In this document: positions 10,530 through 60,741 of the stretch, one piece after another
Numbering within the stretch: position 1 is the first letter of the stretch
How the letters are laid out: each line of letters starts with the position of its first letter
Assembly: GCF_006345805.1 (NCBI RefSeq)
Contig: NW_021833706.1
Location: 1-64,000, forward strand
Length of the DNA: 64,000 nucleotides
DNA from: Octopus sinensis
Lineage: Eukaryota
Reading direction: 5' to 3'
The notes under the pieces: generated by a model
The model's input: the letters and a program-made list of their open reading frames with translations, nothing else
Told to the model about the DNA's origin: nothing
Database searches by the model: none
Program-made: the position numbers and the translations under genes

Positions 10530-11027
10530 TCAATATTTACTGCACACAACGCAGGTTAATTCTCGACCATTGACATACGGTGGACATGGCAATGAACCAC
10601 AAGCAGCCTGAACGAAATATAATAGAGCTCCGTCTTCGTTACTGTAACCCGCTGGATCAGCTTCTGGTGCGTAGTCCACACAACATATTAAAGTCTGCCC
10701 TTATGATCATGACGCGCGGTCATCAAATATCCTGAAAATTCAATCGTCCAACCAGGGTAACAGCGTGTCCTAGCTGGTAAAAATCATTACAACAGCAGGT
10801 TGTCGTGTCAAACAGACAGCGCACGGAACGTTGTGTTCATAAATTGATTCAGCGTTAGCAAAAAGAAAGAGTTTATTAGTTGGGTATAATTCGAATTGAT
10901 ATTCACTGCCATAAATGTAACCACATTTTTCTACTTCTGTCGTATAATTGGCCCAAATGGGATCGTTAGGTAACACAAGAGATTACTACCGCCACCTGTG
11001 TGGTCAAAGAATTGTCCACCACCACAC
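10530..11027 (-). pseudogene. Last exon, copy B: short-chain collagen C4/NC1-like domain, disrupted
   Basis: GGGSNLLCLPNDP..VPCAVC..GYLM..CGSLPCPPY..TCVVCSKY motifs. Acceptor AG>AT, GAA>TAA nonsense change and several 1-nt indels. Confidence 0.88.
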
Positions 11028-11257
11028 ATAGAATTGGTAAGAATAAATCAAATAAAAAAAGATGTAAGCAAAATTATATATGAAATAACGGAAACATTCA
11101 TTACAATTTGACCCTTAAAGAAGTCGTTTAGCCACGTGTGAACGAATTGTGGTGTATATGTTAGTGTTATATGAGTGTAAGCTGTGTGTTGGTGTATGCT
11201 TGAGATCATAGCTGTGCATTTGCATTCTCTTCATATATATATATATATATATCGAAG

Positions 11258-12179
11258 TAAGCAACAAGGATATCCAGAGATAATGCAGTACGATTGTTTC
11301 ATGCAACTCCATTTAATTGAACAATACAATCATTACATCAATTTAAAATATAGAGGAATCTTCAGCTGCACAAATACATAGGATTTAATTCAATTAAAAC
11401 AGATTGACAAATTAGTATAATTATACCCAAATCTCCAAGAAGTTAAGGAGATACACAAAGAACATGTTGTCTCTACTTCAGCATAGTAGTTAATAAAATT
11501 ATCAAAAAATTTATGAATACTTATGAATATAAAAAATATTCAACAATTTCTATCCTTTGTTATATATTCTTCTAAATAATTCTTTGGAAACCCTAAACTT
11601 CAACTGTATTCATAGCAACATTGTTTAAAATATTTTAACTATAATAATGATAAGACCTTCCGTTTCATTGTCAATTGTCTGCCAGTGTGCGACCCCCTTA
11701 ATTATCAGCTAACACCTTGTTTTAAGTTTTCCCTTACTAAATCTCATAGTATTGCTTATAATAATTCTTGAATTTTTATGACTATATACCAACTAGAATG
11801 TCTATCTACTGCCTGAGCCCTCCCCCTAACAGATACTGCCCTATGTTCTCTCAGGCTTAGATATACAAAGGATTTGTAAATTAGTCTATAAATTAAAACT
11901 GACCCCATAAAGACAAAAATCAGTGGTAAGTTGAGTCTTCTTTATAATTTTTAGTAACTGCTATGCTGAAGTAGAGACAACATGTTCTATGTAATATTTG
12001 GAGATTTTAAGTATAATATACAAATGTGTCCATCTGTTGAATTCAATTAAATCCAACGTATTTTGCAGCTGAAAATTGCTCTAAATTTTAAACTGATGTA
12101 ATGATTGCATTGTTCAATTAAATGGAGTTGCATGATGAAACGAACGTACTGCATTATCTCTGGATATCATCGTTGCTTA
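11258..12179. mobile_element. MITE-like foldback element with ~250-bp terminal inverted repeats
   Basis: 11258-~11505 is the imperfect reverse complement of ~11941-12179; no coding capacity. Confidence 0.8.
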
Positions 12180-13489
12180 TTTTAATTTTAATCACCTTAA
12201 TTTGAAATTGTATGGATAATGTCGTACTAAATTCTGGAGGATCAACTTAAGTGCCATATTCATCTGAATCAAATATATATATTTAATATATATATATATA
12301 ATATATATGTAAGTATATGTATATATATATGTTGTGTGTATATACGGGCAAGTATTTGGGGATATGACGTGGATTATTATGTAATTTGCATGGGGAAGTG
12401 TATTTGCGTGGATGTTAATAGAAGGAGAAAAAGAAGGAATTCGGTAACGCATGTACTCGTGTTACCCGAAATGGAAAAGGTGTTCACGAGTGAACGGGGA
12501 TATTTTTGTTGTGATGGAGTCGGCGACCGATAAAATATACGTATAGGATTTATAAAGAGCAGATTCAGAGCATTTTAAAGGAATGTGAGGTTGATTGGGG
12601 ACGCAGCTTGTAGCAGCAGTTTTGAATTGGAAGTTTCGGAATTACCTTACAAAGATATCCTGGATAATTATTGAGGTGATGTGGTGCATGAAAAGAGCAA
12701 GGTTTTAGCGATAGGACGATTTCGGTGAGGCGGAGAAGAATAGAAGTGCATTCTGTACTCTGTTGCGTTCTCTCACTAATATTTAGTCTCTCTCATTTTA
12801 CTTAATGAATAAAGTCCTTAGCTTTTTCCATCAGTTACATGTGGCTTGTCCAGTCCTCATTCTACATTGTGCGTTCATTTCATTAATCGTTTACAGTCAC
12901 TGTCATCAATTATAATAGACTCTATTCAATTTAGCCCACACCTACGATCATGGGCACTCTAGTTAATGATAGTCAAGTGGCCACTTTTTCAGCTCTGGTC
13001 ACTCACGTACATACCACCATCCGTAGCCTGGACAATTGATCACCAGTTAGCAGCCTCGGTATTTGATATATACAATCAAAAGCTGGTCAGCCAGAAATTC
13101 TTGATCGCCATGGTGGTTTTCAGTCGCCCCTATCTGTATTTTTAACGTAGAGATATCTATATTCTGTGGTTAGACAACATCATTTTCATTTGGTCCGTAG
13201 TAGATAACATATAATATTCTGATTTGACCAAATACCTACAAAGGAGTAAGCAGTTCTTGGAGTTTTTGTTTGTTTAGTTAGGTATAGACGTTTGAAACGT
13301 GACATATCGTAAGAGGATTTGAAAACGTTTATGTCAGACAACCCGACAAAGGTGAGTGTGTGTGCATGTGCGTGAGAGAGAGGGTGAGAGAGAAAGGGAG
13401 GCAACAAAAAGAGGGAATGAGAGGTATAAAAAGAGAACAAGAGAAAGACAAAAAAGAGAATGAGAGGTCAGAAATATAAAGTATACAAC

Positions 13490-13563
13490 CGTCATATACA
13501 AGGTTTGAATAAGGAGGACAAGTTGTTCTACCCACCGGGTATACAATGATCCGAGACCGGGTT
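13490..13563 (-). pseudogene. RWGR exon, copy B (1-nt deletion)
   Basis: 74 nt versus 75 in C, E and F; one G lost in TGGGGT; donor GTTGTA. Confidence 0.85.
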
Positions 13564-15199
13564 CTGTGAAATTAAAATGAAATAATGTAGTTTAAAAGAA
13601 AGAATTGGGGGATCATTTACAAAGTATGTTTTTTGGATGGGAAGAATTGATGGAGAAGAGAGAAATATAGAATTTAAGAAAAGAACGAGTGAATGAATGA
13701 AAGTCAGAACGAAAGATGTAAATAATAAGAATAAATTGTAAAGAAGAAAGAAGACATTTGTCTGTTGAGCTTGTTGGTGACGTTGATGTCAAAGATTTGA
13801 GAGATTAATCTCAGAATATCAGAATGTGTATCGGTCTCCGCTATGAACGGATGTATGTATGATACGTAAATTGGGTATGAGTATATATATCTCAATAGAA
13901 TAATGATAAAACTCAATAGAATAATGATAGAAATTCGCCATGTGCGAGTATTCATCGGTCAATTACAAATATCAGTTGGAACTCGGCGCAAATAAGGCCA
14001 TCATAACTACAATATGAAAATAACAACTATACCGCATCATTTGTCGATTTAGTTAAAAGATATCGCATCCGGATCTCGAGTAGAGGGGTCCGTTCGATAA
14101 ATGTATAGCACAACCCACCCAATACCGGTGCAACCAGTAAGAAGCCAGCAACTTAATCTGGGGTGTGTGAGGTGGGAGCACAAAATTGACGGTCTCAGGA
14201 AACCAAAGCAGATGAAGAAGGGAACAACCTTTAATAATTGAGAATTAAAACATCAAAATTGTTAGATATAATCTGCCTGTAAGATATAATCGGTGTCTCC
14301 TCTACAAAATTTCGTTTCTCCGATAGCGTACACCTGGATATAGGCTTGAAACTCCACTACGCAACTGTGGTGCCAACAATGTCTGCACAGGTGAGATTAG
14401 GATACTCTCAATACCCAGCTTTCGGATTGTATTATGCAGTGAAACCGACTAGGTGTGAGGGTTCACCTCTTGAAGCTAAGGCTGAATATGAAGGACCACT
14501 GTGGCTGCTGTAAGTATAATATATGCAGCAAACAGCGGGGTCAAATACATATCCTTCCTAAGCAAATCACCTCAGCTTTAGATATATTTGGGGTAAAGTC
14601 ATTTGTCCTGCAAGGAGACTTCAGTGTCACTTGGCACTGATAACCGTGAGAAGGGTTGATTGGAAGAAATGTCGTCAGTGAACTTAATGGACAGGTCATA
14701 GTAGACTTTCTGCAGGATACACACTCTCATCTCTTTGGTATGGATATTATTTAAGACAGGGATATTTATAAGGGTACCTGGTATAGAAATTCTGAGAGAT
14801 TTCAGTCATCTTTCACTCTTTGATGAACGTTCGGGTTTTGACTACCTAAATGTCTGAAAACCTGAAAATTCCTACAGTCTGCCGAACACTGGCAATTGGT
14901 AAGCCGTGGATGTTGCGATCAGAAACAAAATGTGTAGACTTTTGCATCCAAATGAGAGTGTCCCTCCTAAATTAAGTTGGATATCGAAATACATTCGTGA
15001 ATGTATTATTTTTTTCGGTAGGTTCTTCTTCGTTTGAACGCTTATTTGAGCTAAACTCACTTAAATGTGATAAAATGCTTGTGAAAAGCACGTTCGGGTT
15101 GATATTTTAGAAGCCATAAATACAGATGTATTCTCTGAGTGTCCCATGTACGCTAGGTCGATAAGGCCTCTGGAAAAACACCAAGGCAATGGTAATATG

Positions 15200-15930
15200 G
15201 GGTGACAATCACAATTTTTTCAAACAAAGACCAAAGAGTGTGTTTAATTATAGAAAAGTCTAAACTAGATTTCAGGAAAAGATATGTAGGGAAGTTATCG
15301 CGCCAAAGGTTACTGTCCGGGACACAGTACACCCGACCAGAGAGTCATTCAAAGACAGATCTTCCAGCAAACGTTGAAGCATTTCAAGAGGAATACGCTG
15401 TAAACCACGAAAAGGCACATGATCACGTGCCCTGAGGCATGTTGTGGGATGGTTTACCAGGAAGGTGAGTTTACTGGGCAAATACTGGTTGCCATAAAAT
15501 ATATATGGATGTTCAATGATTGTATTTATGTAAAAGTGGAAAGTTTTCAACGAGAAGTTTTCACTTAGTTGAAGTGTGCATTGTTAATGCCCCTTCTCAC
15601 ATTCTATTTTGTGATCTGGTTGAATATGCTCAGCCATTGTGGTAGAGGTATCCCATTCATCTCTACGTGATCGGTCGACTGTTATTTGTAGACGACAAGC
15701 TGCTACCTAATTTGTCTGATTGTCACCAACAACGTGCACTGAATGGGTTGGCTGCCGAGTACACCAAGGCAGGATTGACAAATATGCACTGTGTAGGAAA
15801 GTGGAAATCATTATTTCGGGTCTCTATTCGCGAATGATTGGAAGCACAAGAGTTGACAGAATGCTGAATTGTAGATATAAACGCAGTGATGCGCCAGCTC
15901 GGGCATTTGATTCTCAGATGAAGAAGGCAT
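15200..15930 (+). mobile_element. Degenerate RTE-type LINE reverse transcriptase fragment
   Basis: Paralogous units read HEKAHDHVPW..LFW..IKYLY, RLLFVDDMLL..QQRAL. Remnant probably extends from about 13960 to 16070. Confidence 0.75.
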
Positions 15931-16079
15931 TCATGCTTTTCGTATGCAAGCCGGTGGGCTCGCTCTGAGCACTCTAATGTTTTTCACAGTGAATGTACCG
16001 GCCGACTAGGACACTCGGCAAAGAGCTCCCTCAGAGGAAACGTGCGGGCCGAAACAATTCTCGACGTTGCACTGCATAT

Positions 16080-16357
16080 TTTATTTATTTGTTTTTTATT
16101 TATTAAATTTGGCTCAAAGCAAATAGCAAGGCCATGTAGTGGGACATGGAGTTAAGTACAGGGTGGTGTTCATGTGAAGAGTTCAGGCCACTTGAGGTCC
16201 AGGGAGGCTTTGAACAAAGCGGTCGTCGGCATCTTCACATCTCTTCTGGCAGCTTGTTCCACGGATCGGCAACCCGGACGGAGAAACGCTCCTCTCCTTC
16301 GATTGAGACGAAATCGTCGCAGGTAGAGCTTTTCGGAATGACCCCGCAGCCGACGCT
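16080..16357 (-). mobile_element. 5'-truncated CR1/L2-like LINE 3' end, unit-B-specific
   Basis: RLRGHSEKLYLRRFRLNRR...FKASLDLKW resembles the CR1 ORF2 C-terminus; A-rich tail; CATAT flanks both sides; empty site in C and E. Confidence 0.8.
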
Positions 16358-16719
16358 CATATATATACTCATATACACACAATAAATGGCCATAGTATAT
16401 TAGAATAACATTATATTTAGGGAATCTTGTAAAGTAGAACATATTTTGAAATAAATTCAGGCAAGTGTCTGAGTTTATATTATTGTGGATATATGGATAG
16501 TAATAGTAATGTGGAACTAATTCAAAGTTGGTAAAATTTTAAATCATTAGTTAAGGAGACACGGGTAAAAGACTTTAGCCATAAAATCAGTTTACTTGGC
16601 GTATCATCAGGTTTATCGTCGAGAGATTTCTTGGAGATGAAACGGTTCTGTGAAAAAATAGAAATAGCATCATATAAATAGAACTTCAGTGTATTATTAT
16701 CGGACGGATCATTGCAGAC

Positions 16720-17000
16720 ACTACCATCTCAACCCTTAGGAATATTCTAGAAGGCGCTTCAATCGAGTCGAACGATTTTCTGAACAATCAGACAATAAAA
16801 ATCTGAATTTCAAATGACATCGTTTGGTGAATCTAAGAAGATAGATAAACATGAATTACGCCGACGTGAAAGTTCAAGGCAAGTCTATCCCCTCATGGTT
16901 CCCTGGTACCCGCGAATGAACAACCACCGTTCTCCAAACTTACTCTATAAGTGATGTAGGACAACAAACCCGACGTGAGGTGTCAAAATTTCCGATGATG
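16720..17000 (+). mobile_element. Helitron Rep N-terminal fragment (degenerate)
   Basis: Unit C copy reads FLKNVRKYNSAFQMTSYG..FTPTSK, matching the Helitron IRKYNSAFQMTSFG..PTFK region. Confidence 0.75.
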
Positions 17001-17399
17001 GGTCGTGTTAGACACAGCGCACACTGCTGCAAAGGAGAGTATATCCACTGACAGCTTTCGGTGCGTTCAAAAATCACTCTAACTCCACCTCCAATTTTGC
17101 ATGACAGGTTAGGGCCTGAAACACTCCAAACGGACGCTTAGCATGTTGCTTAGTCGAATTAGCCCAGCATTTACTCTACAAATGTTTTGTTGTCAATGTT
17201 GCACTTTCCCATATCACCTGTTTCAAAATGACTGGAATATATTATATACCATCTTTGCCATTTTAATCCCCTGCAATGCCGGGTATGACTGCTAGTACAC
17301 ACACACACACACACACACAAATATATATACACACACATATTTCTACATATATATATATATATATATCTACACACATGTATATATATAGTTAAATTTAAT

Positions 17400-17660
17400 C
17401 CAAACAAGAAAGCACAAAAAAAACAACAACGCGAGGACGTGGAACAAATATATTATTACTGGACGCTCAGTAGAGAAGGAAAGAAGGAGGGTTTAACGTT
17501 TCGGGTGGAGCTCTTCGTCGGAAACTTACGAGAAGGAAAGATCCAGAGGAGGGAAAACGGAAGACAAAAATCGCCAATGGTACACACGCGGGCGCATTTT
17601 GAATAACGGAAGGGAAATGGGAGAAGTAGTAAGATCTTTCAAAGACAGGAGAGAGGTAGA
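17400..17660 (-). mobile_element. Old PLE-like terminal remnant with decayed hammerhead-like motif
   Basis: Minus strand GTTT-CCGACGA-AGAGC..C-GAAACGTT-AAAC. Also at about 30810 and 53870. Confidence 0.4.
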
Positions 17661-18612
17661 GGAGGAGGGATGTGTGTGTGTAAGTGGATAAGAGCGTGCG
17701 CGGAGGTCTGCGTGTGCGTGTGTGTATGTGAGTATGTGGTATGGTGCAATGATGACAAATGTGTGTGTGGTGCATGTGCGTGTGTAAAGTGTGGGTGGTG
17801 GGCTGTTAATCTTTGCGTGTGTAGGGTTTAGAGTGTTAAGGTCAAGGAAGAAGGAGAAGGATTTGGGCGTGGCTCCTTTTGTCTCTACCACAGGTCAAGT
17901 AGTAGGTACTGCTAGTTTGATGTATGTGTGTGTGTGCGTGTATGTATATGTATCATGTGTGTATTGTTTGTAGTGTGTGTGGTGTGCATGTGTGTGTGTT
18001 CGTGTGTGTATGCGTAGAGTTTGGGTTTGTAGCGAATAACTGTGCGTATGTGTGTGTACATGTATGTATAATTGTGCGCGTGTATGTATGGGACGTAGTG
18101 TGGGTTCATTTGTGTGTGTGTGTATGTATGTGCGTGCGTCTCGTATGTGCGTGTGTGCATGTACGTGTACGTTTGTATGTGTGTGTGTAAGCGTATATGG
18201 GTTGTATAGCGTGTATCCGTGGGGTTGTGAGTTTTCGGTGTGTGCATTAATGTGCGTGTGTACGTGCGTATGTGTGCGCATGTTTTTGCGTGCGTGGTGT
18301 GTGTGTGTCTCTGTCTATATGTGTATACGGATGTGTATGTGAGTGCGTGTAGGCATATATTGTGTGTATGTATATGTATCGGTGTGTATGTGAATTTGTA
18401 CATGCATGTGTGTTTTGGGTTTTTCTGGAGTTTTGTGGGTGTAATGTGCGTGCGTGTGTGCGCTTAAGTACGTGTATGTGCGTGTGTGTCTGTGCCCATG
18501 TGTGTATAAGTCTGTGCGTATCTGTATAAAGGTATATGTGGACATCTGTGCTGGTGTGTGTGTATGTACGTGTGTATGTGTGCGTGCGTGTTTTGTGTGC
18601 GTATGATACATA

Positions 18613-18906
18613 TATCTCCGTGATCACCGTCACAGACCAGGCTATCAGTTGTTGCTATACATCGCTGGTCACAATGCGCTTCGCGTTGTTTTAGCCTTCA
18701 AATGACGCCACCCCGCTGGCTAAGCGAGCAGGCCAACAGAAGAAAGGGAGAAAGTTGTAGCGAAAGAGTACAGCAGAGATCAACACAACCCACTCCCTGA
18801 GCCTCGTGGAGCATTAAACACTCATAACGCCCAGTCTGGGAATCGAAACCGCGATCCGACAATCATGAGTCCGCTGCGCTAACCACTAGTCCACTGCGCC
18901 TCCACA
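18613..18906 (-). mobile_element. tRNA-derived SINE
   Basis: Full-length homolog of 1-168; B box GTTTCGATTCC on the minus strand. Confidence 0.75.
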
Positions 18907-19210
18907 CAGACATATATATATATATACATACATATCAATATATATATTACACATAATATCACAAATACACATATCTACTTATACGCATACACACACACAA
19001 ACGCACACATATATGTGAGTGGACATACACTGTATAGTGTGATTGTTCGTGTACAATTGAGCACGGTGTCTGTGTGCGTGCGTATGTGTGTGTGTTTGTG
19101 TTTATTGTGCGTGTGTTTGTCCGTGTGTCTGTGTGTATGTATTTACATTCGTTCTTACATATTGATATATAAAAACCAACGTGAATTACAGTCAAACATT
19201 ACGAAATCAC

Positions 19211-19287
19211 CGATCTACATTGGCACTCGCACGTTTTATTTTCATTTGGAAAGAAAAGATTTTAAAAAACTCGCCTCACTTCCGTTC
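19211..19287 (-). pseudogene. Candidate internal exon, copy B (in-frame TAA)
   Basis: Homolog of 6086-6162 reading GTT TTT TAA. Confidence 0.45.
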
Positions 19288-19520
19288 CTGATGGAGAGAA
19301 ATAGATAAATGTGTGTAAATATGTACGTATTCCTATGTGTGGTGTGTGTGTGTTTGTAGGTCTGTTTCTGTGCGTGTGTGTAAGTGTACATCTAGATAAT
19401 ACTTAACACTAATATTAATAGGGCTAAACGTTGCAGCGACAGGGCATGGACATGCTAGAACCCCACCATTAGATCTTTTCATACGCACTTATTTCCCTCT
19501 CCAGGATTATGTCTGGTAAA

Positions 19521-19758
19521 AGAGCGATCGGACAGGAGTACAATTCCACCCTTCTTTGTGTTTAATTGGGATGTGTGTATATGTATGTATATATAGATAT
19601 AGATATATATATCCATATACATATATATATATATATATATATAATATATATATATATGTATATGGATATATATATCTATATCTATATATACATACATATA
19701 CACACATCCCCATATTAAACACAAAGAAGGTGGAATTGTACTCCTGTCCGATCGCTCT
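19521..19758. repeat. 238-bp palindrome centred on (TA)n
   Basis: 19521-~19620 recurs as its reverse complement at ~19656-19758; unique to unit B. Confidence 0.9.
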
Positions 19759-21047: not shown

Positions 21048-21189
21048 CGTTTTCGATTTCTTTCCATTTTCCTATTCTTGAATCTTGATGAAGAATCACG
21101 ATCGTCAGAACGAGAAGAACCCCAAAAGCTATGAGAGAAGAAATGGAATAACGCTGCGAAATATTTCTGGACAGTTGTGCGAAATCCAT
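21048..21189 (-). pseudogene. First coding exon, copy B (142 nt, 2 nt short)
   Basis: ATG at 21189, donor at 21047; two 1-nt deletions near the 3' end. Confidence 0.7.
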
Positions 21190-22279
21190 TCTGGTGACAG
21201 TTGTCGGTCGTACGTGATACTTCGTGTGGCTTCAACAAAAGATCGAGATGCGAGGTTTAAGCTGAAGACCTGTGACTGAATTCCACGTATTTATTGAGCG
21301 CACAACACCCAGCTCGGGCATAGATCTTATCGTAAATTTATGAACCAATGCGATTGGTGGAACTGTAAAAGTGGGTGTGAACTTGTCTGACAGGTTTAAT
21401 TATTGAAAGAGATGGTTTGATATTGTCACAAAATAATTAGCAAAATATTTTGATGAATGATAGACACGTTGTAAAGTGAATGATTCCTGTTTCTGGATAT
21501 ATTAAGATATATTTATTTACTAATGTTGTTATTAATTTTATTTGTTATTCTTGGGAAAACTTTTTAATATTCAGTGTGGGATGTATTTCGTTCAACAGAC
21601 GAATACACAGACACACACAAAACACACACACACAGAACACACACACACATACTGCACACAAACCCACACTCACACACTGACACACACACACACAACACAC
21701 ATACACACGCACACATGACATACATACACACACACACACAAATACACACACCACACTGAATTACACACGACACACTGACACGCAAACACACACATACTGA
21801 CATACACTGCCACACACACACGACCGACACACCACACACCAACACTGACATAACACACACAAACGCACACAGTGAAACACACACTGACACACACACACAT
21901 CTGACATTACACACACACACACAAACACACACACACACTGACATAAAACACACACAAAAGCACCAGTGACAACACACCACTGACACACACTGGCACACAC
22001 CAGTGACACACACCAACTGACACACACACACATTTGTACACCACACACCACACACACTGACACGCACACAAACAAACACGCACCACTGGCTCACACACAC
22101 TGACAACAACACACACATACACATACAAACACATACAAACAGACACACGCACACCCCAGACACACACACGACACATGACACTCACACAAAACTGACACAC
22201 ACACACACACACACTCAGAAGGACACACACACACACACACACTGACACACCACACAACACTGACACACACAAACACTGA

Positions 22280-22313
<34 letters not shown>

Positions 22314-24061
22314 GACACACTCACACCACACTCACTGGTGCACACACACACCTACACCCACACACTGACACACACACACATACACAAATGCGGGGAAAAT
22401 GCAGGCGTACGAAGCGACCGCAGTTTCTGTTGGGGCACAAGGTTGAAGGTCAACTCCTCTAGCGAAGTATTTATGAAAGAGAAATACCGAAGGGAGGTAA
22501 CTCACGACAGACTCCAGCCTGGCGCTCTGATGGCGTCACTTACTCGTTGTTGTTTGACTATGTTTAAGTTAAAGCTATGGCTTTAAGTTTGTCTAGATAT
22601 TCCCCTCTTCGGTATTTTCTTTTGATAACGGCTGAACTGGAACCCGATAGGGAGCAGCACTGGACTGATATGCTGTTTTTGCAACTTTTGCACAGAATTT
22701 GCGTTTTAGAGTTTGAAATATGCCATTAGCACATTTTAACGAACCCAAAAATTGCTTATGCCTAATACTGAGCGCTAATACTGTTCACTGGAAACGCCAT
22801 GTTGAATGTTTCCATATATTCATTTGTCAATTTGCATTTCGTGCTTTCATATTACTTAATTATTATTCTTTTTCTCTAGCTTTTTACAAATCGAGCATTC
22901 TTATGGCACGCAATTAATCGGACAAAAAACGTGCTGCCACCCACAGATCCCTCTTTTCCACGGATACCTTCGTTTATCTGGCAGCCATTCTACAAACTCC
23001 CACATACAAGGAGCAATCATGCTGGATAGAGTGTGAAAGACTCAACATGTTGCACTGATTCCACCTAATGTATATTTTATAAGTCGTCTTCCTTTCCTTA
23101 CTAAGTCGTTTATGTGTGTTACAGTTATTGTATGCATGTATCTCGAAGCAAGTTCCTCTTCTGCGAGTTTGATAGTTTTATGTTACAGACGGAGATAATT
23201 TGTTGAACTCGATGTTTTGTGGTGTTGCTGTAGATTCGGTTGATGCTGTTCCTGAAGTTTACTCATATTTCTTGGTGGTTTCATATTTTATTTTGGCACA
23301 TCAGTGTTCAGGGAACGATGAGAGGCTGCGTGTGTAATGTGACGCGAGGCTGTGTGTCTGTGATTTTTGAAGAAAAGCGGGAATATGTGAATGTAGGTTG
23401 AAAATAGTTAATCGTGGGACGTGTACTTGTACCTTTCGAAAGTGTTTCTTGAAAACTTCAATGTTTAGTAACCTGACAGTAGTTAGGTAGTCAACATTTT
23501 GTGGTATTACTTCAGTGGATATCAAATATCCTTTATTAGGTAATATCCGCATTGGATTGCAGAGCTTTCATCGCATCGATTGTAGTTACAATGATACGTA
23601 TGGGAGTATTTTTTTTATTACACCATCATGATTTAGTGATGTTAGTTATAAGCTTTATCGTGTTTTCTGAAGATTGATCATGAAAGGTGATATATTTGTA
23701 CGGGTGTTTCTTTTGGGGATTGTTTTCATTTTAAGACGGAATACAACACACATTTAAACGAATCATCATTTTACTTCAACATTTAAATTTGATAAACTTA
23801 ACCTCAATACAATGTATGCTAGAATCATTCCCCGAGGATTATATCGTTCTGTTAAGCTATTTGTCACATTCTATGACGTCTCTGTTGTTTCGTTTTGAAT
23901 ATTTTCTGAAAAATTGTAGCAGAAATTTATTTAACGACATATATTAGTTGGATAAAATATTGCGAAACACAATTACAAGAAACGTATATGTTGCTCTATT
24001 ATATTATATTTTATGATTCGCCGACATAAAGTTTCATATAGAAACGAATGTAAATTTCTAT

Positions 24062-24564
24062 TCAATATTGACTGCACAAAACGCAGGTTAATTCTCGACC
24101 ATTGACATACGGTGGACATGGCAATGAACCACAAGCAGCCTGAACGAAATATAATAGAGCTCCATTTTCGTTTCTGTAACCTGCTGGATCAGCTTCTGGT
24201 GCATAATCCAACACACACATATTCATGTCTGCCCTTATGCTTATAATACTCGGTCATCAAATATCCCGAATCTAGCTGTCCCAACCAGGGTAACACTCGG
24301 GTAACACTTGTCTGCTGGTAACATCATAACAACAGCAGGTGTCGTGTCAAACAGACAGCGCACGGAACGTTGTGATGATGAAGTGATTCAGCGTTAGCAA
24401 AAGAAAAGAGTAGTTGGGTAAAAATTTAGTTCATATTCACTACCCATAAATGTAACCTCCTTCTTCAACTTCTGTAGTATAATTGGCCCAAATGGGATCG
24501 TTGGGTAGACACAAGAGATTACTTCCGCCACCAGTATGGCTATAAAGTTGTCCACCAACAACAC
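24062..24564 (-). pseudogene. Last exon, copy C: C4/NC1-like domain with multiple indels
   Basis: Intact acceptor, domain motifs, several 1-nt indels, a small deletion after YPT and an ~11-nt duplication (GGTAACACT). Confidence 0.8.
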
Positions 24565-27121: not shown

Positions 27122-27196
27122 CGTCATATACAAGGTTTGAATAAGGAGGACAAGTTGTTCTGCCCCACCGGGTATACAATGATCCGAGACCGGGTT
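27122..27196 (-). CDS. RWGR exon, copy C (xPGLGSLYTRWGRTTCPPYSNLVYDG)
   Basis: 75 nt, ttcacag acceptor, GTTAGT donor, phase 1-1 matching the last exon. Confidence 0.85.
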
Positions 27197-34753: not shown

Positions 34754-34897
34754 CGTTTTCGATTTCTCTTCCATTTTTCCTATTCTTGAATCTTGATGAA
34801 GAATCACGATCGTCAGAACGAGAAGAACCCCAAAAGCTATGAGAGAAGAAATGGAATAACGCTGCGAAATATTCCTGGACAGTTGTGCGAAATCCAT
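34754..34897 (-). CDS. First coding exon, copy C
   Basis: 144 nt, same 48 aa as copy A, GTAAGT donor. Confidence 0.75.
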
Positions 34898-37701: not shown

Positions 37702-38201
37702 TCAATATTTACTACACACAACGCAGGTTAATTCTCGACCATTGACATACGGTGGACATGGCAATGAACCACAAGCAGCCTGAACGAAATATAATACAGC
37801 TCCGTCTTCGTTTCTGTAACCTGCTGGATCAGCTTCTGGTGCATAGTCCATACACACATATTCAAGTCTGCTCTTATGTCCGTTATGCTCGGTCATCAAA
37901 TATCCCGAATACTCAGCTTTCCAACCAGCGTAACACTTTGTCCTGGCTGGTAACATCATAACAACAGCAGGTTGTCGTGTCAAACAGACAGCGCACGGAA
38001 TGTTGTGGTCATGAATTCATTCAGCGTTAGCAAAAGAAAAGAGTTTATTAGTTGGGTATAAGTCTAATTGATATTCACTGCCATAAATGTAACCACCTTT
38101 TTCAACTTCTGTCGTATAATTTGCCCAAATGGGGTCGTTAGGTAAACACAAGAGATTACTTCCGCCTCCAGTTTGGGTATAATGTTGTCCACCAACCACA
38201 C
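37702..38201 (-). pseudogene. Last exon, copy D: C4/NC1-like domain with one nonsense codon
   Basis: Frame intact except TCA>TGA at 38017-38019 (ANAE*IHDH). Confidence 0.9.
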
Positions 38202-39771: not shown

Positions 39772-41043
39772 CGAGGGACGTTCAATAAGTAATGCCTCTG
39801 ACCTACTTGCAGTTGTGTGATCTAGCTGAAATTTTGCATGTGCAATCACTTATATCTCTATAGAGTAAGTGGCAAATTACAGTTTCTGATTTACACGTGT
39901 TTGACCTGAGTCAAGTGTGAAATGGAGCCTGTTGAGTGGCGAGCAGTGATCCGGTTTTTGTATTTGAAAGGACGCACACCACGGAAGACTTTTGATGAAA
40001 TGAAAGTAACTTATGGTGATGATGCCCCATCATATGACCTTGTAAAACGCTGGCATAATGAATTCAAACATGGTCGGAACTCTGTGGAAACAGCTCTCAG
40101 ATATGGTCACCCCCTTCTGCCATTGATGAGGCATCTGTCCGTCAAGTTGAGGCTGCCATTTTGGAAGATCGACGCATAACTATTCGCCAAATAGCCCATG
40201 AGGTCAAGATTAATACCGGGTCTGTGGAAACTATCATTCATGACCTTCTGCATATGCAAAAGGTGTCTGCCAAATGGATTCCCAGGTTGCTCACATCTTT
40301 CCAGACGCAAGAACGCGTCGAGTGCTCGAAGATGAATTTGGAGATGTGCCAAGAAGATGAGTCAAAATTTTTCAAAAGTCTGATTACACAGGATGAAAAC
40401 GGTCCATCACTTTGAACCAGAGACCAAAGCCCAGTCAATGCAGTGAAAGCACTGTGACTCACCTCCTCCATAGAAGGCAAGGGTGCAGCCCTCCGCTGGT
40501 AAGGTCACGCTCACAGTCTTCTGGGACCAGGACGGAGTAGTGATGACAGATTTCCTGGCAAAGGGTACCACAATTACAGGAGCCTATTATGCTTCACTTT
40601 TGAGGAAATTAAGAGAAGCTATCAAAATCAAGAGGCGGGGCAAGTTCAACAAAGGTATCCTCCTGCTGCAGGACAACGCTCCGGTCCACAACTCGCGTGT
40701 CACCAAATCAGAACCACAGGCATGCGGCTATGAACTCCTCCCCCATCCCCCTACTCTCCTGACCTTGCATCCTCTGATTTTCACCTCTTCCCAGTCATGA
40801 AGTTGTTTTTGAAAGGAAAGCGTTTCCCAGATGATGCAGCTTTAATTTCTGAAGTCACATCGTGGTTGGAGGACCAAGCTGGGATCTTCTACAAAAACGG
40901 TCTCCAGAGCTGCGTCAAACGGTGGGAGAACTGCGTAACTCTGGGTGGTTTTTATGTAGAAAAAGACTAATAACTGTGCCAAATTTCGTTGCTCTACTGC
41001 TAAGGGAAGTGGGTCAGGGGTATTACTTATTGAACGGCCCTCG
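39772..41043 (+). mobile_element. Mariner transposon (irritans/Himar1-like), full length, defective
   Basis: TIRs CGAGGG(A/C)CGTTCAATAAGTAAT, TA target duplication; empty site GACATATCATA in other units. Confidence 0.95.
39922..40970 (+). pseudogene. Mariner DD34D transposase, frameshifted
   Basis: MEPVEWRAVIRFLYLKG, WIPR, TQDE, FWDQDG, QDNAP, YSPDLASSD motifs across frames. Confidence 0.93.
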
Positions 41044-41227
41044 TATCATAAGAGGATTTGAGAATGTTTATGTCGGACAACCCGACAACGGGTGAGTGTG
41101 TGTGCATGTGCGTGAGAGAGAGAGGGTGAGAGAGAAGAGGTCAACAAAGTGTGAATGAGAGGTATAAAAAGAGAACAAGAGAAAAACAAAAAGAGAATGA
41201 GAGGTCAGAAATATAAAGTATACTAAC

Positions 41228-41246
41228 CGTCATATACAAGGTTTGA
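41228..41246 (-). pseudogene. 19-nt remnant of RWGR exon, copy D (deletion breakpoint)
   Basis: Donor side retained, then the sequence jumps to intron-1 (GA)-rich sequence. Confidence 0.85.
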
Positions 41247-41648
41247 GTGATAGACGGAGATATACAGTGATAGATACACACACGCATATATTTGTTTGTA
41301 TATATATATCTATATATGTTCACGCACTAATATATTCATATATATGTATATTTATATATACATATATATGTATATTATATATACAAATATATGTATATGT
41401 ATATATATGTATATTTAGGTGTGTGCGCCTGTGTGTTCGTGTGTGATTACGTGTGTGATCTTATGTGTGTGTGTGTGCTCCATAGGAACATATGTACATG
41501 GTTCATGCATACATCCTTACATTCATCCATCGATCGGTACGTACATACATCCACACATTAATACATACATACGTAAATGCATACATACATACATGCATAT
41601 ATAAATACATAAAGACATACATATATTAACACAAAATCCATGACTTAC

Positions 41649-41792
41649 CGTTCTCGATTTCTCTTCCATTTTTCCTATTCTTGAATCTTGATGAAGAATC
41701 ACGATCGTCAGAACGAGAAGAACCCCAAAAGCTATGAGAGAAGAAATGGAATAACGCTGCGAAATATTCCTGGACAGTTGTGCGAAATCCAT
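41649..41792 (-). pseudogene. First coding exon, copy D
   Basis: 144 nt, one K>R change; the gene copy is otherwise broken. Confidence 0.75.
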
Positions 41793-44274: not shown

Positions 44275-44807
44275 TACATACATGCATACATACATACATA
44301 TATACATACATACATATATACATACATACATGCATACATACATACATACATACATGCATACATACATACATACATACATACATACATACATACATACCCC
44401 CATACATACATATATACATACATACCCCCCATACATACATATATACATACATACATACATACATACCCTCATTCATACATATATAAATACACACACACAT
44501 ATATACATACATACACACATACATACACACATACATACATACAAACATACATACACACACACACATACATACATACATACATACATACATACACACATAC
44601 ATACTTTCACACTTACATATATACATGCATGCATATATGTATACATACATACATGTATGTATACATGTATACATGCATGTATGTTTGAATATAAGCATGT
44701 ATATATCGATAGACACATATACACATACATATATATACAAACATACTTACATACATACATACATGCATACATACTTACATCCAGCCATCCATACATACAT
44801 ACATACT

Positions 44808-45360: not shown

Positions 45361-45442
45361 ACATACATACATGCATTCATACATACATATATACATACAT
45401 ACATACATACAAACATTCATACATGCATACATACATACATAA

Positions 45443-45473
<31 letters not shown>

Positions 45474-47762
45474 CATACATACATACATACATACAAACAT
45501 TTATACATGCATACATACATACATACTTACATACATACATATATACATACATACATACATACATACATACATGCATACATACATGCATACATGCATACAT
45601 GCATACATACATTCATGCATATATACATACATACATGCATACATACATACATGCATACATACATACATTCATGCATATATACATACATACATGCATACAT
45701 ACATACATGCATACATACATACATACATGCATACCTACTTACATACATGCATACATACATACATACATACATACATACATACATTCATGCATACATACAT
45801 ACATACATACATACATACATACATACATGCATACATGCATGCATACATACATACAGACATACATACATGCATACAAAAATATCCTGTTCATGTTGTTGAA
45901 ATTCCAATGAAAGATACTTGGAACTAAGTTAGAAGCCGTCTCTCTTTCTGTTGGCCAGAAATATTCTATTAAAACCGAATAATGACATTCATACATATTT
46001 TTAGCTAGTCATTATCACTAGCTTTGAATATGTTTCTTCTTGTTTTATAAATCATAGCAAAACTTACAGGTACAGTGTCTCCCATTCGAAACTCAATTCG
46101 CAAGTGCACCTTCCGTATGGACTGCATATGTACGACGGAATTCCATAGTTATGATTAAATTTTCTTAGATGAAGCATATTAGACCTCTCAGATATAGTTT
46201 GACCTAATTTAATATATATGTGTGCGTGCGTGTGTGTGTGTGTGTGGTGTGTGTGTGTGTGTGTAACACTCACTGTTTGGCCCTCGAAATAAGGTGAATT
46301 TGAAATAAGCTACAAAATAAATCTTACAGCCATGTCAGATTTCAACAAAGTCCCATAATTTTTCCTATTGTAATGGCGGGTTGCATATGCAGCTGCGCAT
46401 GCTCTGTACAGCTTAAACACCTGGCGGTCGTTTTAACTGTCTAATTATGCCGCTGAATCAAAAGATGAATTTGAAGATCTACCAGCGTCCGTATTCTCTG
46501 CAATTGTTTACGATTTACAACCAGGAAAATATTTGTAATCTGGAGAAGCGAATGCAGATTTACCCATTAGACTAATAATAGTGGGATAGTAAACATTAAT
46601 AATCTTTAATCTTTATTGCAGCTTGATGTTCTTAACCGAACCCTTCTTTTATCTAACAAATATTCGACACACTCCAACATACTGTCATGAATCCTATTGG
46701 ATATAACGTGACGGTCACAACATCTCAGCCTTCTTACACACAGCATCCGTGATTGCCCTGACTATATTTGCTCTCTTTACTCTCACTTATATGGGTGTTG
46801 TATTCGTTTGGCATTAAATGTATTCAGCTTCTAGGATCCATCCTTTTTTCGGTTCTGGTATGTTTACGTAGATGAGTGAAAGAAATCGTCGTATTTGATG
46901 TTCTCTGCTTTCGAAATGAGGCAATTTTTCTGGTTGATTTCATTTCTTATTCTTGTATATCAGCATTTAGTGTATGACGTGTATGTTGTGGGCATCGAGT
47001 TTCGTTTTGTATCTTATTTTGAAGAGAGGTGGGAATTTTGTGATATAGATTTAGGTTGGCAGGACCAATACTCATTTATACTGTCTTTTGAAGGATTGAT
47101 CGCGTAAATTCCACATTCTCAGAGAGCTTAATTTGAACATTTTGTGATATTTCTAAAGTAGACGATAAATAGGTTTTATAAGATATGGGGTAGGAATGGA
47201 ACGGAGAGCTTTCCTGATTAATAACGTCAAATAGAATGGATTGTGTGGAAGTATCTGGTTGTTGTTGAAAGAATCAGTTAAGTTCCGTGCGAAGTAATGT
47301 AGCGGTTCATGGCTCCTCGTCAGAATCCGAGTTGTAATTTGAAAACCAAGATGTCTGAGATAGTAGCGTCGAGTATTAGAAATTCTAAGGCTGTGCATGA
47401 AAAGCTGATATAATTCTATGGTGGTACTTTATTTGGGGTTTGTTGAATCATGAGACAGAAGACAAAATACTGTTAAACAAAATAACATTTTATTTCAACG
47501 ATAAGTTTGATAAACTGAAATCTTACAAAATGTTTTCTAGAATCATTTCGACAGATTTAGACTTTTCTTGTTTTTGAGGATATTTCTTGTATTCTACGTC
47601 GCCTCTTTTGTATTGTTTGAATATCTTCTGTAAACTAGTATAACAGTTTATTGTAACGATAGACATACTTTAAAGAAAATATTAGGTAAAACAATTGAAA
47701 TTTTATGTTATTTATTGTAATTCACAGACATATTTTCATATGGAACCGAATTTAATTTCTGT

Positions 47763-48259
47763 TCAATATTTACTGCACACAACGCAGGTTAATTCTTGAC
47801 CTTCGACATACGGTGGACATGGCAATGAACCACAAACAGTCTGAACGAAATATAATAGAGCACCATCTTCGTTTCTGTAACCCGCTGGATCAGCTTCTGG
47901 TGCATAATCCACACAAACATATTCATGTCTGCCCTTATGATCATAACGCTCGGTCATCAAATATCCTGAATACTCAGTTGACCAACCATCGTAACACTTT
48001 GTCCTGGCTGGTAACATCATAACAACAGCAGGTTGTCGTGTCAAACAGACAGCGCACGGAACGTTGTGTTGTTGAAGTGATTTAGCGTTAGCAAAAGAAA
48101 AGAGATTATTTGAGTAGTGGCCTAATTCATATTCACTGCCATGAATGTAACCACCTTCTTCAACTTCAGTCGTATAATTGGCCCAAATGGGATCGTTAGG
48201 TAAACACAAGAGATTACTTCCGCCACCTGTGTGGTCATAAAATTGTCCACCAACCACAC
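47763..48259 (-). CDS. Last exon, copy E: intact short-chain collagen C4/NC1-like domain
   Basis: 497 nt, ttctag acceptor, phase 1, 164 codons then a stop, 9 Cys here plus 1 in the RWGR exon. Confidence 0.92.
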
Positions 48260-50762: not shown

Positions 50763-50837
50763 CGTCATATACAAGGTTTGAATAAGGAGGACAAGTTGTT
50801 CTACCCCACCGGGTATACAATGATCCGAGACCGGGTT
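50763..50837 (-). CDS. RWGR exon, copy E
   Basis: 75 nt, ttcgcag acceptor, GTTAGT donor, open frame. Confidence 0.88.
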
Positions 50838-52540: not shown

Positions 52541-53069
52541 AAAAGAAGAGGGCATTCTATGCTTATCGTATGCAAGCCGGTGGGGCTCGCTCTGAGCACT
52601 CTAACTTTTTCACAGTGAACGTACCGGCCACCTAGGACACTCGGCAAAGAGCTCCCTCAGAGGAACCGTGCGGGCCGAAACAATTATCGACGTAGCACTG
52701 CAAATATGCTCATATACACGCAATAAATGGCATAGTATATTAGAATAACATTTTATTTAGGAACTTATTGTAAAATATTTTAAAATAAATTCAGGCAAGT
52801 GTCTTAGTATATACTATCGTAGACATGTGGATAGTAATGTGGAACTAATTCAAAGTTGGTGAAATTATAAATCATTGGTTAAGGAGACACGGATAAAAGA
52901 CTTTAGCTATAAAATTATTTCTTACTTGGTGTGTCATCAGGTTTATCGTCGAGAGATTTCTTGGAGATGAAACGGTTCTGTGAAAAAATAGAAATAGCAT
53001 CATATAAATAGAACTTCAGGGTATTTATTATCGTTTAGAACTTAAAACAATGCAATAGATGACAACATA

Positions 53070-57353: not shown

Positions 57354-57497
57354 CGTTTTCGATTTCTCTTCCATTTTTCCTATTCTTGAATCTTGATGAA
57401 GAATCACGATCGTCAGAACGAGAAGAACCCCAAAAGCTATGAGAGAAGAAATGGAATAACGCTGCGAAATATTCCTGGACAGTTGTGCGAAATCCAT
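57354..57497 (-). CDS. First coding exon, copy E
   Basis: 144 nt, same 48 aa as A and C, GTAAGT donor. Confidence 0.78.
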
Positions 57498-60237
57498 TCT
57501 GGTGACAGTTGTCGGTCGTAAGTGATACTTCGTGTGGCTTCAACAAAAGATCGAGATGCGAGGTTGAAGCTGAAGACTGTAACTGAATTCCACGTATTTA
57601 TTGAGCGCACAACAACCCAGCTCTGGCATAGATCTTATCGTAAATGTATGAACCAATGCGATTGGTGGAACTGTAAAAGCGGGTGTGTGAACTTGTCTGA
57701 CAGGTTTAATTATTGGAAAGAGATGGTTTGATATTGTCACACAATAATTAGCAAAATATTTTGATGAATGAGAGACACGTGTAAAGTGAAATGATTCCTG
57801 TTTCTGGATATATTATGATATATTTATTTACTAATGTTTTTATTTAATTTTATTTGTTATTCTTGGGAAACTGTTTTAATATTCAGTGTGGGAAGTATTT
57901 CGTTCAACAGACGAGTACACAGACACACACAAAACACACACACACACAAACACACACACACAAACACACACACACACACTGACACACACACACACTGACA
58001 CACTGACACACACACACACACACAGACACACATACACAGGTACGCACACACTGACACACACACACACACTGACACACACACACACGCACACTGAGAAACA
58101 CACACACACTGACACACACACACCGATACACACACAAATACAAACACACATACACACTGACACACCCACACACACACACACTCTCACACACACACACTGA
58201 CACACACACACTGACATACACACACACACATACACTGACACACACACACACACACTGACATACACACACACACACACACACACACTGACACACATACACA
58301 CTGACATACACACACACACACAGACACACACACACTCACACACACACACACTGACATACTCATACACACATACACACATTAACACACACACACACATTCA
58401 CACACACACACATACACTGACGCACACACACACATACACACTGATAAACACACACACACACACTGACCCACACACTGTGACTCACACACACTGACACACA
58501 CACACGCTGTGACACACACACACACATACACACACACGGACAGATGCACACACACACACACACACATATGCGGGGAAAATGCAGGCTCGTACGAGCGACC
58601 GCAGTTACTGTTGGGGCACAAGGTTGAAGTCATCTCCTCTAGCGAAGTAGTTATCAAAGAGAAATACCGAAGGGAGGTAACTCACGACAGACTCCAGCCT
58701 GGCGCTCTAATGGCGTCACTTACTCGTTGTTGTTGACTATGTTTAAGTTAAAGCTATGGTTTTAAGTTTGTCCAGATATTCCCCTCTTCGGTATTTTCTT
58801 TTGATAACGGCTGAACTGGAACCCGATAGGGAGCAGCAGTGGACTGATATGCTGTTTTTGCCGCTTTCTGCACTGAATTTGCCTTTAGAGTTTGAAATAT
58901 GCCATTAGCACATTTTAACGAACCTAAAAATTGCTTATGCCTAATACTGAGCGCTAATACTGTTCACTGGAAACGCCATGTTGAATGTTTCCATATATTC
59001 ATTTGTCAATTTGCATTTCGTGCTTTCATATTACTTAATTATTATTCTTTTTCTCTAGCTTTTTCACAATCGAGCATTCTTATGGCACGCAATTATTCGG
59101 ACAAAAAACGTGCTGCCACCCACAGATCCCTCTTTCCACGGATACCTTCGTTTATCTGGCAGCGATTCTACAAACTCCCACATACAAGGAGCAATCATGC
59201 TGGGTAGAGTGTGAAAGACTCAACATGTTGCACTGATTCCACCTAATGTATATTTTATAAGTGGTGTTCCTTTCCTTACTAAGTCGTTTATGTGTGTTAC
59301 AGTTATTGTATGCATGTATCTCGAAGCAAGTTCCTCTTCTGCGAGTTTGATAGTTTTATGTTACAGACGGAGATAATTTGTTGAACTCGATGTTTTGTGG
59401 TGTTGCTGTAGATTCGGTTGATGCTGTTCCTGAAGTCTACTCATATTTCTTGGTGGTTTCATATTTTATTTTGGCACATCAGTTTTCAGGGAACGATGAG
59501 AGGCTGCGTGTGTAATGTGACGCGAGGCTGTGTGTGTGTGATTTTTATAGAAAAGCGGGAATATGTGAATGTAGGTTGAAAATATTTCATCGTGGGACGT
59601 GTACTTGTACCCTTGTCGAAAGTGTTTCGTGAAAACTTCAATGTGTTAGTAACCTGACAAGTAGTTAGGTAGTCAACATTTTGTGGTATTACTTCAGTGG
59701 ATATCAAATATGCTTTATTAGGTAATATCCGCGATTGGATTGCAGAGCTTTCATCGCATCGATTGTAGTTACATTGATACGTATGGGAGTATTTTTCTTA
59801 TTAAACCATCATGATTTAGTGATGTTAGTTATAAGCTTTTATCGTGTTTTTTGAAGATTGATCATGAAAGGGTGATATATTTGTACGGAGGTGTTTCATT
59901 TGGGGATTGTTTTCATTTTAAGACGGAATACACACATTTAAACGAATCATTTTATTTCAACTTTTAAATTTGATAAACTGAACCTCATAAAATGTATTCT
60001 AGAATCATTCCCTGAGGATTACATCGTTCTGTTAAGCTATTTGTCACATTCTATGACGTCTCTGTTGTTTCGTTTTGAATATTTTCTGAAAACTTGTAGC
60101 AGCAATTTAATTAACGACATATATTAGTTGGATAAAATACTGCGAAACATAATTACAAGAAACGTATATGTTGCTTTAAAATATTATATTTTAGGAATCG
60201 CCAACAAATTTTCATATAGAAACGAATGTAATTCTAT

Positions 60238-60741
60238 TCAATATTTACTGCACACAACACAGGTTAATTCTCTCGACATCGACATACGGTGGACATGGCA
60301 ATGAACCACAAGCAGCCTGAACGAAATACAGTAGAGCTCCATCTTCGTTTCTGTAACCCGCTGGATCAGCTTCTGGTGCATAATCCACACACACATATTC
60401 TTGCCTGCCCTTTTCTGCGTGATGACTAGCCATCAAATATCCTGAATACTCAGCTGTCCAACCAGAGTAACACTTTGTCCTGGCTGGTAACATCATAACG
60501 ACAGCAGGTTGTCGTGTCAAACAGACAGCGCACGGAACGTTGTGCTCATGAATTGATTCAGCGCGTTAGCAAAAGAAAAGAGTTTATTAGTCGGGTAATA
60601 CTGTAGTTGATATTCACTGCCATGAATGTAACCACCTTTTTCAACTTCTGTCGTTATAATTGGCCCAAATGGGGTCGTTAGGTAGACACAAGAGATTACT
60701 TCCGCCACCTGTGTGGTCGTACCATTGTCCACCAGCCACAC
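60238..60741 (-). pseudogene. Last exon, copy F: C4/NC1-like domain with small indels
   Basis: Domain split over ORFs 60517-60741 and 60245-60520. I saw only 1-2 nt indels and no nonsense substitution, so it may be intact in vivo. Confidence 0.7.

Follow-up and report, generated by a model that had tools for sequence, protein, structure and literature searches.

This study concerns a 64,000-nucleotide stretch of octopus DNA from contig NW_021833706.1 (the whole stretch is called the window here) and the tandem array of genes that lies in it. The window is eukaryotic DNA, AT-rich and laden with microsatellites, and its self-alignment shows tandem units of about 12-13.6 kb each on the minus strand. 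Each unit of the array is a gene with four exons that belongs to the family annotated as "short-chain collagen C4-like" (spongin-type NC1), and the array is part of an octopod-expanded branch of that family. Five copies of the roughly 495-nt last exon (exon 4), labelled B, C, D, E and F, lie on the minus strand between 10536 and 60743. An earlier sequence-only reading had located all five correctly and had described them as carrying five hypervariable patches in an otherwise invariant NC1-like scaffold, to be understood as a recognition receptor family under diversifying selection. The observation was partly confirmed here and the interpretation was partly supported. As genes, only copy E is intact and open, while copies B, C, D and F are broken and lack an open reading frame. 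The loops that vary in exon 4 proved to be old, copy-specific and conserved between species.

The gene structure was established from homologs and from direct reading of the splice sites. It consists of four exons on the minus strand: exon 1 of 48 codons, exon 2 of 52 nt, exon 3 of 75 nt (the "RWGR" exon) and exon 4 of about 495 nt. Copy E runs from 57497 to 47763 and is undamaged throughout, with a product of 255 residues. Its exons are as follows:

57354..57497, minus strand: exon 1, 48 codons (MDFAQ...KSKT) from the ATG to the GT donor, 100% identical to Octopus vulgaris proteins
52926..52977, minus strand: exon 2, 52 nt, encoding NRFISKKSLDDKPDDTP plus one base, with the AG acceptor and GT donor read and a tblastn match
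50763..50837, minus strand: exon 3 (the "RWGR" exon), 75 nt, splice sites read, identical in copies C, E and F
47763..48259, minus strand: exon 4 including the stop codon, recognised by its open reading frame, by homologs of 84% identity and by an AlphaFold2 model

The open reading frame of this last exon has 164 codons (47763-48257, minus strand), and it is the sole intact last exon within the window. Exon 1 encodes a short cytoplasmic tail and a hydrophobic signal-anchor, exon 2 a charged stalk, and exon 3 the opening strand of the NC1-like domain with its first Cys. The predicted protein is thus a type II membrane protein of about 255 residues without collagen repeats, laid out as a cytoplasmic tail of 14 residues, a helix that forms the signal-anchor, a charged stalk some 40 residues long and a two-lobed, 10-Cys NC1-like domain of about 185 residues. 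In copy E the hydropathy maximum (mean Kyte-Doolittle value of 2.67 for a 19-mer) falls at residues 15-33, and nearly all full-length octopod and Argonauta homologs have a hydrophobic 19-mer at the same position, with values of 1.8-2.7. From hydropathy only, the octopod proteins are predicted to be type II single-pass membrane proteins. Several Octopus vulgaris gene models omit exon 3.

A search with the copy E open reading frame returned 717 homologs at E <= 1e-5, the best of which were octopus "short-chain collagen C4-like" proteins with 84% identity; the 255-aa protein itself was absent from the protein collection searched. Homologs bearing the family name included proteins of Amphimedon (P0076, 2e-50) and Branchiostoma (P0053, 9e-56), both with Pfam Collagen repeats. 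The amphioxus, sponge and anemone relatives contain 8-22 Gly-X-Y triplets, whereas no run of four or more such triplets was found in copy E or in any octopod homolog examined, and Pfam Collagen was absent from the relative P0005. The name "short-chain collagen C4-like" is uninformative and partly wrong for these proteins because they contain no collagen. A peptide of one family member is present in an Octopus vulgaris ink proteome (PMC10142993).

Pfam scans of copy E and its homologs gave no domain model for the NC1-like domain, and sequence and profile searches of the PDB produced chance RING-finger matches only. The AlphaFold2 model of copy E exons 3 and 4, built with 79 aligned homologs, had a mean predicted local distance difference test score (pLDDT) of 91.5 and a predicted template modelling score (pTM) of 0.88. 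When this model was compared with the PDB using Foldseek, the best 40 matches were all collagen IV NC1 domains (probability 0.87-1.00, and 1.00 for the top 32), with E values down to 2.8e-6 and template modelling scores (TM-scores) of 0.43-0.47 for the best matches and 0.34-0.47 over the 40. Within the domain, the N half is homologous to the C half (hhalign 95.7%, E 1e-8), which indicates an internal duplication, as in the NC1 subdomains. In the 79-sequence alignment C16, C44, C94, C97, C114, C141 and C184 are invariant and C168, C173 and C187 are at least 90% conserved; the nine Cys columns encoded by exon 4 are fixed in all exon-4 copies, as the sequence-only reading had said of the window. 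According to Fidler et al. (2017, PMC5395295), spongin NC1 domains have ten Cys, seven in common with collagen IV and three that are spongin-specific, and the count of ten conserved Cys found here is the one given in that paper. Spongin short-chain collagens are already treated there as a variant of collagen IV NC1, and Fidler 2017 (PMC5395295) cites Exposito 1991 and Aouacheria 2006 on them. The modelled fold of the octopod domain is NC1-like, as had been proposed for the window; the family is a known one and the octopod architecture is a variant of it.

Every patch string quoted in the sequence-only reading was recovered from the DNA alignment, including the in-frame stop of copy D in patch 3, although patch 4 of copy C (PGWTAE) is present solely after indel repair. 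In copy E the patches lie at the following places:

48231..48242, minus strand: patch 1 (FYDH), with columns 6 and 8 flagged by codon site model M2a; pairs with patch 5 in the internal repeat
48108..48128, minus strand: patch 2 (ELGHYSN), an indel-prone loop, with columns 46 and 47 flagged by M2a
48066..48083, minus strand: patch 3 (KSLQQH), with a ratio of nonsynonymous to synonymous differences per site (pN/pS) of 1.1-2.2 on six codons
47973..47990, minus strand: patch 4 (DGWSTE), the least variable patch, with pN 0.14 and pN/pS 0.51
47925..47954, minus strand: patch 5 (TERYDHKGRH), with columns 105 and 108 flagged by M2a

Copies D and E, said to differ at about 30 of 165 residues, differ at 31 of 165 aligned residues by tblastn and at 29 in a masked codon alignment, 19 of which are in patches. 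The remaining parts of the units are much more alike. The 48 codons of exon 1 show no difference among copies A, C and E and a single change in D, those of exon 3 are the same in C, E and F, and D and F have a common intron-3 variant with 4.5% mismatch over 1180 nt; all three observations agree with the earlier description. The description of the scaffold as otherwise invariant was overstated, however, as 46 residue columns vary in the window, 24 of them among the 34 patch columns and 22 among the other 132. The five patches stand as hot spots but not as a full count, since a sixth variable patch is found in relatives at exon-4 residues 29-39. As to composition, His accounts for 13.7% of the residues in patches and 0.6% of those in the scaffold (17 intact copies), and an excess of charged residues was likewise borne out, but Tyr, which had also been named, is not enriched in patches relative to the scaffold. 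Judged from composition, the His enrichment could point to a dependence on pH or metal.

Because the patches were defined on the window copies, they were tested afterwards on an independent set of 16 exon-4 copies from ten loci of Octopus sinensis, Octopus vulgaris and Octopus bimaculoides. In these copies the mean entropy was 1.29 bits in the patches compared with 0.37 bits in the scaffold (Mann-Whitney p = 8e-9), and pN was 0.31 and 0.06, respectively. Replacements are therefore concentrated about fivefold in the patches, both in the window and in independent paralogs. That patches set on the window are the most variable stretches in independent copies shows that the pattern is beyond chance and not a post-hoc artefact. 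In the model the patches sit in inter-strand loops with lower pLDDT (80-89 vs 96-98). In the internal repeat found by hhalign, patch 1 corresponds to patch 5, patch 4 to the residues following Cys16, and patch 3 to a C-terminal V-x-G-x spot. Loop variation thus follows the pseudo-symmetry of the fold itself. The stretch after the first Cys of exon 3 (PPYSN, SPYSS, PTNSS, PRNSS) varies among the paralogs of other genomes (P0001-P0016) but shows no variation across the window copies, as would be expected if exons 1-3 had been homogenised locally.

Divergence between the units is layered. Between window units, intron 3 and the 3' flank are 3.5-8.8% divergent, and introns, flanks and exons 1-3 together differ by 4-9% between units. 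The exon-4 scaffold differs by 6.7% over its nucleotides and by 14.6% at four-fold sites, and the patch nucleotides differ by 28.8%, compared with about 6% in the introns. The patches therefore do not simply match the divergence of the introns, which had been named as a result that would tell against selection; at about five times the divergence of neutral flanks, they cannot be explained by drift or relaxed constraint alone. However, the dN/dS above 1 that had been expected in the patches was not found. Pooled patch pN/pS, with pS estimated by the Nei-Gojobori (NG86) method, was 0.81 in the window and 0.69 in the 16 independent copies, and that of the scaffold was 0.26-0.27.

Comparisons between species show that these differences are maintained. 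Unit B is about 99% identical to Octopus sinensis CM016876.1 in unique DNA, and copy B and its Octopus sinensis ortholog (Os4) have no patch differences at all. In an ortholog pair from Octopus vulgaris and Octopus bimaculoides (Ob1-Ov6), the patches have 6 nonsynonymous differences over 95 sites and 6 synonymous differences over 25 (a ratio of about 0.26), and the scaffold has 6 over 285 and 15 over 81, respectively. Counterparts in Octopus sinensis and Octopus vulgaris have common patch sets. Each paralog's patch set is thus kept by purifying selection between species, and ongoing hypervariation is not supported. Loops that are paralog-specific and then conserved fit fixed specificities rather than a running arms race. 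The neighbours of unit B differ from the neighbours of its counterpart in CM016876.1, and no window unit other than B had a match above 96.4% among the ten octopus loci compared.

Recombination among paralogs was detected by the pairwise homoplasy index (PHI) test (p <= 0.0005 with 10-14 sequences). In the exon-4 tree bootstrap values are 8-52% and the branching is star-like. Short tracts have been exchanged between paralogs, resulting in mosaic patch combinations; one Octopus vulgaris copy has patches 2-3 of E, patch 5 of F-like copies and patch 6 of B. A mutator specific to exon 4 was considered unlikely and rejected, as the mismatch between unit B and its Octopus sinensis ortholog is about 1% in exon and flank alike in the unique DNA of their 12.7-kb alignment.

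Selection on single codons was examined using pairwise counts and marginal-likelihood site models. The site test used our own approximate codon-model code, which marginalises over ancestors and keeps relative branch lengths fixed. On one tree M2a was preferred over M1a with a likelihood-ratio test statistic (LRT) of 64.5, placing 62% of codons at a dN/dS ratio (ω) of 0.05, 32% at ω 1 and 5.6% at ω 4.3. Columns 6, 8, 34, 37, 46, 47, 105 and 108, eight codons in four patches, were flagged with posterior above 0.95, and the strongest of these sites flank an indel-prone stretch. On three segment trees the LRT was 7.8, 18.9 and 6.1, so that the signal halves. Across the M2a fits about 5% of codons are at ω 2.6-5, with recombination present and the LRT lower on the segment trees. 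The site test thus gave a positive result on a single tree that weakened once recombination was taken into account, and the single-tree test was rejected as proof of selection given the PHI result and the halved signal. Positive selection may act at a handful of loop codons, though this is not secure.

The broken copies differ in the kind of damage that they carry. Together with exon 1 of a further copy, A, their parts are as follows:

7677..7820, minus strand: copy A exon 1, intact
10536..11022, minus strand: copy B exon 4, disrupted by four indels of one base each, loss of the acceptor AG and a TAA stop in frame
13488..13563, minus strand: copy B exon 3, with a frameshift
21058..21189, minus strand: copy B exon 1, 3' end frameshifted
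24065..24564, minus strand: copy C exon 4, disrupted by six or more indels, among them a loss of 5 nt and a duplication of 8-11 nt
about 27122-27196, minus strand: copy C exon 3
about 29827-29878, minus strand: copy C exon 2
34754..34897, minus strand: copy C exon 1, intact
37705..38201, minus strand: copy D exon 4, without indel but with one in-frame TGA, in patch 3
39922..41095, plus strand: Mos1/mariner transposase remnant in intron 3 of copy D (Pfam HTH_48 6.9e-9, Transposase_1 4.2e-17)
41226..41249, minus strand: copy D exon 3 remnant, the last 8 codons and donor only
41649..41792, minus strand: copy D exon 1, with one K>R change
60241..60743, minus strand: copy F exon 4, broken by +1, +2 and +1 insertions
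about 63001-63075, minus strand: copy F exon 3; exon 1 of this copy lies outside the window

No exons 2-4 of copy A were found further 3' in the window. In copy D exon 2 is gone, exon 3 lacks its 5' part, and what remains of exon 3 adjoins the mariner remnant. Broken copies are more frequent here than elsewhere, as 19 of 24 exon-4 copies in other assemblies are intact and 5 of 24 broken, while one of five is intact in the window; the Octopus sinensis ortholog of copy B exon 4 is intact. Aligned with Octopus sinensis (window 7253-19702 vs L001 40910-53500), unit B has 69 single bases missing and 23 extra, and there is about one indel for every two substitutions, a pattern that may reflect an under-polished long-read assembly. 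In copy B exon 4, all eight of the differences from the ortholog are error-like or disabling, and each of the three clean substitutions is a G>T next to a T. Multi-base rearrangements in C, structural lesions in D and the lack of indels in E and in D exon 4 suggest real decay. Copies C and D are judged to be real pseudogenes, whereas for B and F it is uncertain whether decay is real, and the damage could partly be assembly error. The question of decay or error leaves the patch sequences unaffected, and several patch variants recur in other assemblies. Broken or fragmentary exon-4 copies also occur in the reference arrays of Octopus sinensis, Octopus bimaculoides and Octopus vulgaris (L009 1251-1745, L005 22478-22708 and L007 22049-22192). 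In the chromosome-level assemblies of Octopus sinensis, Octopus vulgaris and Octopus bimaculoides, the arrays lie at about 4-6.5 Mb, 11.1-11.7 Mb and 41.4 Mb.

We consider it probable, at about 0.6, that the loops are paralog-specific features kept by selection in a recombining array of octopod spongin-type NC1 genes. The array would evolve by birth-and-death together with unequal crossing-over or gene conversion, and the layers of divergence would then be layers of age, with the flanks and exons 1-3 homogenised, the exon-4 scaffold only partly so and the loops untouched. Positive selection may in addition have driven a few loop codons. The conserved β-scaffold would present five to six or more His-rich loops, and these may set a binding or oligomer-partner specificity for each paralog, either at the cell surface or after shedding. 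By analogy, such specificity would mirror the selection of partner chains by NC1 in collagen IV.

Several points weigh against this reading. The TM-scores to NC1 are all below 0.5, Pfam C4 (PF01413) is not matched by copy E or its homologs (E <= 1-10), and a HMMER profile of the homolog alignment did not reach any NC1 chain in a search of PDB sequences. With only the five window copies, which offer 26 informative sites, the PHI test gave no significant result (p = 0.74), and the homogenisation of the flanks would follow from the divergence layers only. Where transitions dominate, NG86 overestimates pS, and the true distance between four-fold sites and introns could therefore be less than the figures suggest. 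The positive-selection signal comes from approximate code, weakens on segment trees and peaks beside an alignment gap. The pseudogene status of some copies may be partly technical, given the 69 missing and 23 extra bases of unit B and the G>T changes next to T in copy B. Finally, we infer the function of the octopod NC1-like genes wholly, by analogy, and the same applies to the reading of the loops as a recognition surface.

One alternative, in line with the sequence-only reading, is a family of immune, adhesion or chemosensory receptors whose ligand-binding surface diversifies in an ongoing arms race, and a lineage-specific tandem expansion with loops rich in His and charged residues and with patch divergence five times that of introns is what such receptors might show. 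The site test points the same way, with its LRT of 64.5 and eight flagged codons, and segment 2 remains significant on its own tree (LRT 18.9). However, pooled patch pN/pS is only 0.69-0.81, recombination inflates site tests and the LRT halves on segment trees, and the orthologs keep their patches (B and Os4 being identical, and Ob1-Ov6 at about 0.26). Four of five window copies are broken, which is a better fit to birth-and-death than to a prized repertoire, and an arms race is therefore regarded as improbable. If the patches were instead unconstrained surface loops that drift, and the window pattern mostly pseudogene decay, one would expect a patch ω near 1, as is obtained with the exon's own dS, and many neutral codons, as in the 32% that M2a puts at ω = 1; the lower pLDDT of the patches and the broken state of B, C, D and F would also be natural. 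Yet neutral sites cannot reach 29% where the introns of the same units differ by about 6%, and patch variants recur in intact genes elsewhere (B equals P0004, and C resembles P0010 and Os6). Nor would drift leave orthologs with a patch pN/pS of 0.26, or broken B with zero patch differences from its intact ortholog, and we find neutral drift unlikely as an explanation.

It is highly unlikely that the copies differ because their tandem repeat was collapsed or assembled with many errors. The single-base indels of unit B, the error-like or disabling changes in its exon 4 and the excess of broken copies (4/5 here vs 5/24 in other assemblies) do agree with assembly error, but the patch differences are multi-base, in-frame codon changes, and several patch variants are found independently in the Octopus sinensis and Octopus vulgaris assemblies. 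In addition, copy E (768 nt coding) and D exon 4 are without indel, which would be unlikely if errors occurred evenly at the rate of unit B, and the 5-nt loss and 8-11-nt duplication in C and the exon loss with a transposon in D are atypical of read errors. A bolder reading, quite doubtful at present, is that in octopods the module by which collagen IV selects its chains has become a surface code that is anchored in the membrane and free of collagen. Tandem NC1-only genes, dozens in number, would then differ in pseudo-symmetric pairs of His-rich loops (patch 1 with patch 5, and patch 4 with its exon-3 counterpart). These loops would decide which paralogs join as trimers, or as trans head-to-head hexamers between cells, and short-tract conversion would reshuffle the loop cassettes. 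Such a code might serve cell-cell or cell-matrix recognition in parallel to the octopus protocadherin expansion.

The closest known system is that of the spongin short-chain collagens, a family of non-ecdysozoan invertebrates. The octopod proteins resemble them in sequence (E 1e-46 to 1e-56 to collagen-repeat members of amphioxus, sponge and anemone), in the 10-Cys framework and in the NC1-like C-terminal domain. They differ in lacking any Gly-X-Y segment, in having a signal-anchor at residue 15 rather than a cleavable signal peptide, in forming large tandem arrays (at least 19 protein clusters from Octopus sinensis alone among the best 120 matches) and in their paralog-specific loops. Collagen IV NC1 (for example PDB 1LI1, 1M3D, 1T61 and 5NAX) shares the fold found by Foldseek, the two homologous subdomains and part of the Cys framework, and it is established as the module that selects partner chains (PMC5395295). 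The octopod domain differs from it in having no Pfam C4 or HMMER profile match, in TM-scores of 0.43-0.47 and in having no triple helix attached; spongin NC1 is without the domain-swapping region and the HSQ motif (Fidler 2017, PMC5395295).

Two further systems offer comparisons of evolutionary mode or pattern only. Clustered protocadherins are likewise tandem arrays of cell-surface proteins in which most of the unit is homogenised while the specificity segments are diverse and conserved between orthologs, but their fold is unrelated, and the octopod genes each have their own constant exons, with no shared constant region or alternative promoter choice. Snake venom phospholipase A2 (PLA2) and cone-snail peptides are similar in that the last exon has diverged further than the non-coding DNA around it; in the octopod genes, however, overall dN/dS is less than 1, sequences are conserved between orthologs, the exon does not evolve faster than its flank in the one ortholog pair, and there is no hint of a secreted toxin.

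The family and its relation to NC1 have been published and its octopus members annotated. In the literature searched there was no cephalopod study of the "short-chain collagen C4-like" family and no description of the membrane-anchored, collagen-free tandem expansion in octopods, of its paralog-specific loops or of the layered divergence, and on function there were only lists of differentially expressed genes in other phyla. Lineage-specific gene expansions are a main lead for explaining cephalopod biology. If the loops do set binding or assembly specificity, the array would be a natural series of NC1 scaffolds with swapped loops, which would bear on how NC1 chooses its partners and on how recombining tandem arrays keep diversity. 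If the loops are merely tolerated variation, this would be an ordinary birth-and-death gene cluster.

Some further features of the window were noted. Its synteny with Octopus sinensis breaks off near 7250. An inverted pair (399-1043 and 5053-5711), 97% identical, flanks a 1.5-kb (TGTATA)n array at 3369-4849. On the plus strand at 1263-1891, two adjoining open reading frames resemble a retroelement reverse-transcriptase remnant by eye; Pfam gave no match for them at E <= 0.01. The 3' flank of copy E is unrelated to the 3' flanks of the other four copies, and the interval from D exon 1 to the 3' end of E contains about 3 kb of (CATA)n-type repeats (42733-45875) with an internal duplication at an offset of 1078 nt. 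Directly 5' of exon 1, at the same relative spot in every unit, is an imperfect (AC)n microsatellite of about 0.7 kb:

8237-8878: (AC)n microsatellite 5' of exon 1
21605-22386: (AC)n microsatellite 5' of exon 1
35317-36015: (AC)n microsatellite 5' of exon 1
57917-58566: (AC)n microsatellite 5' of exon 1

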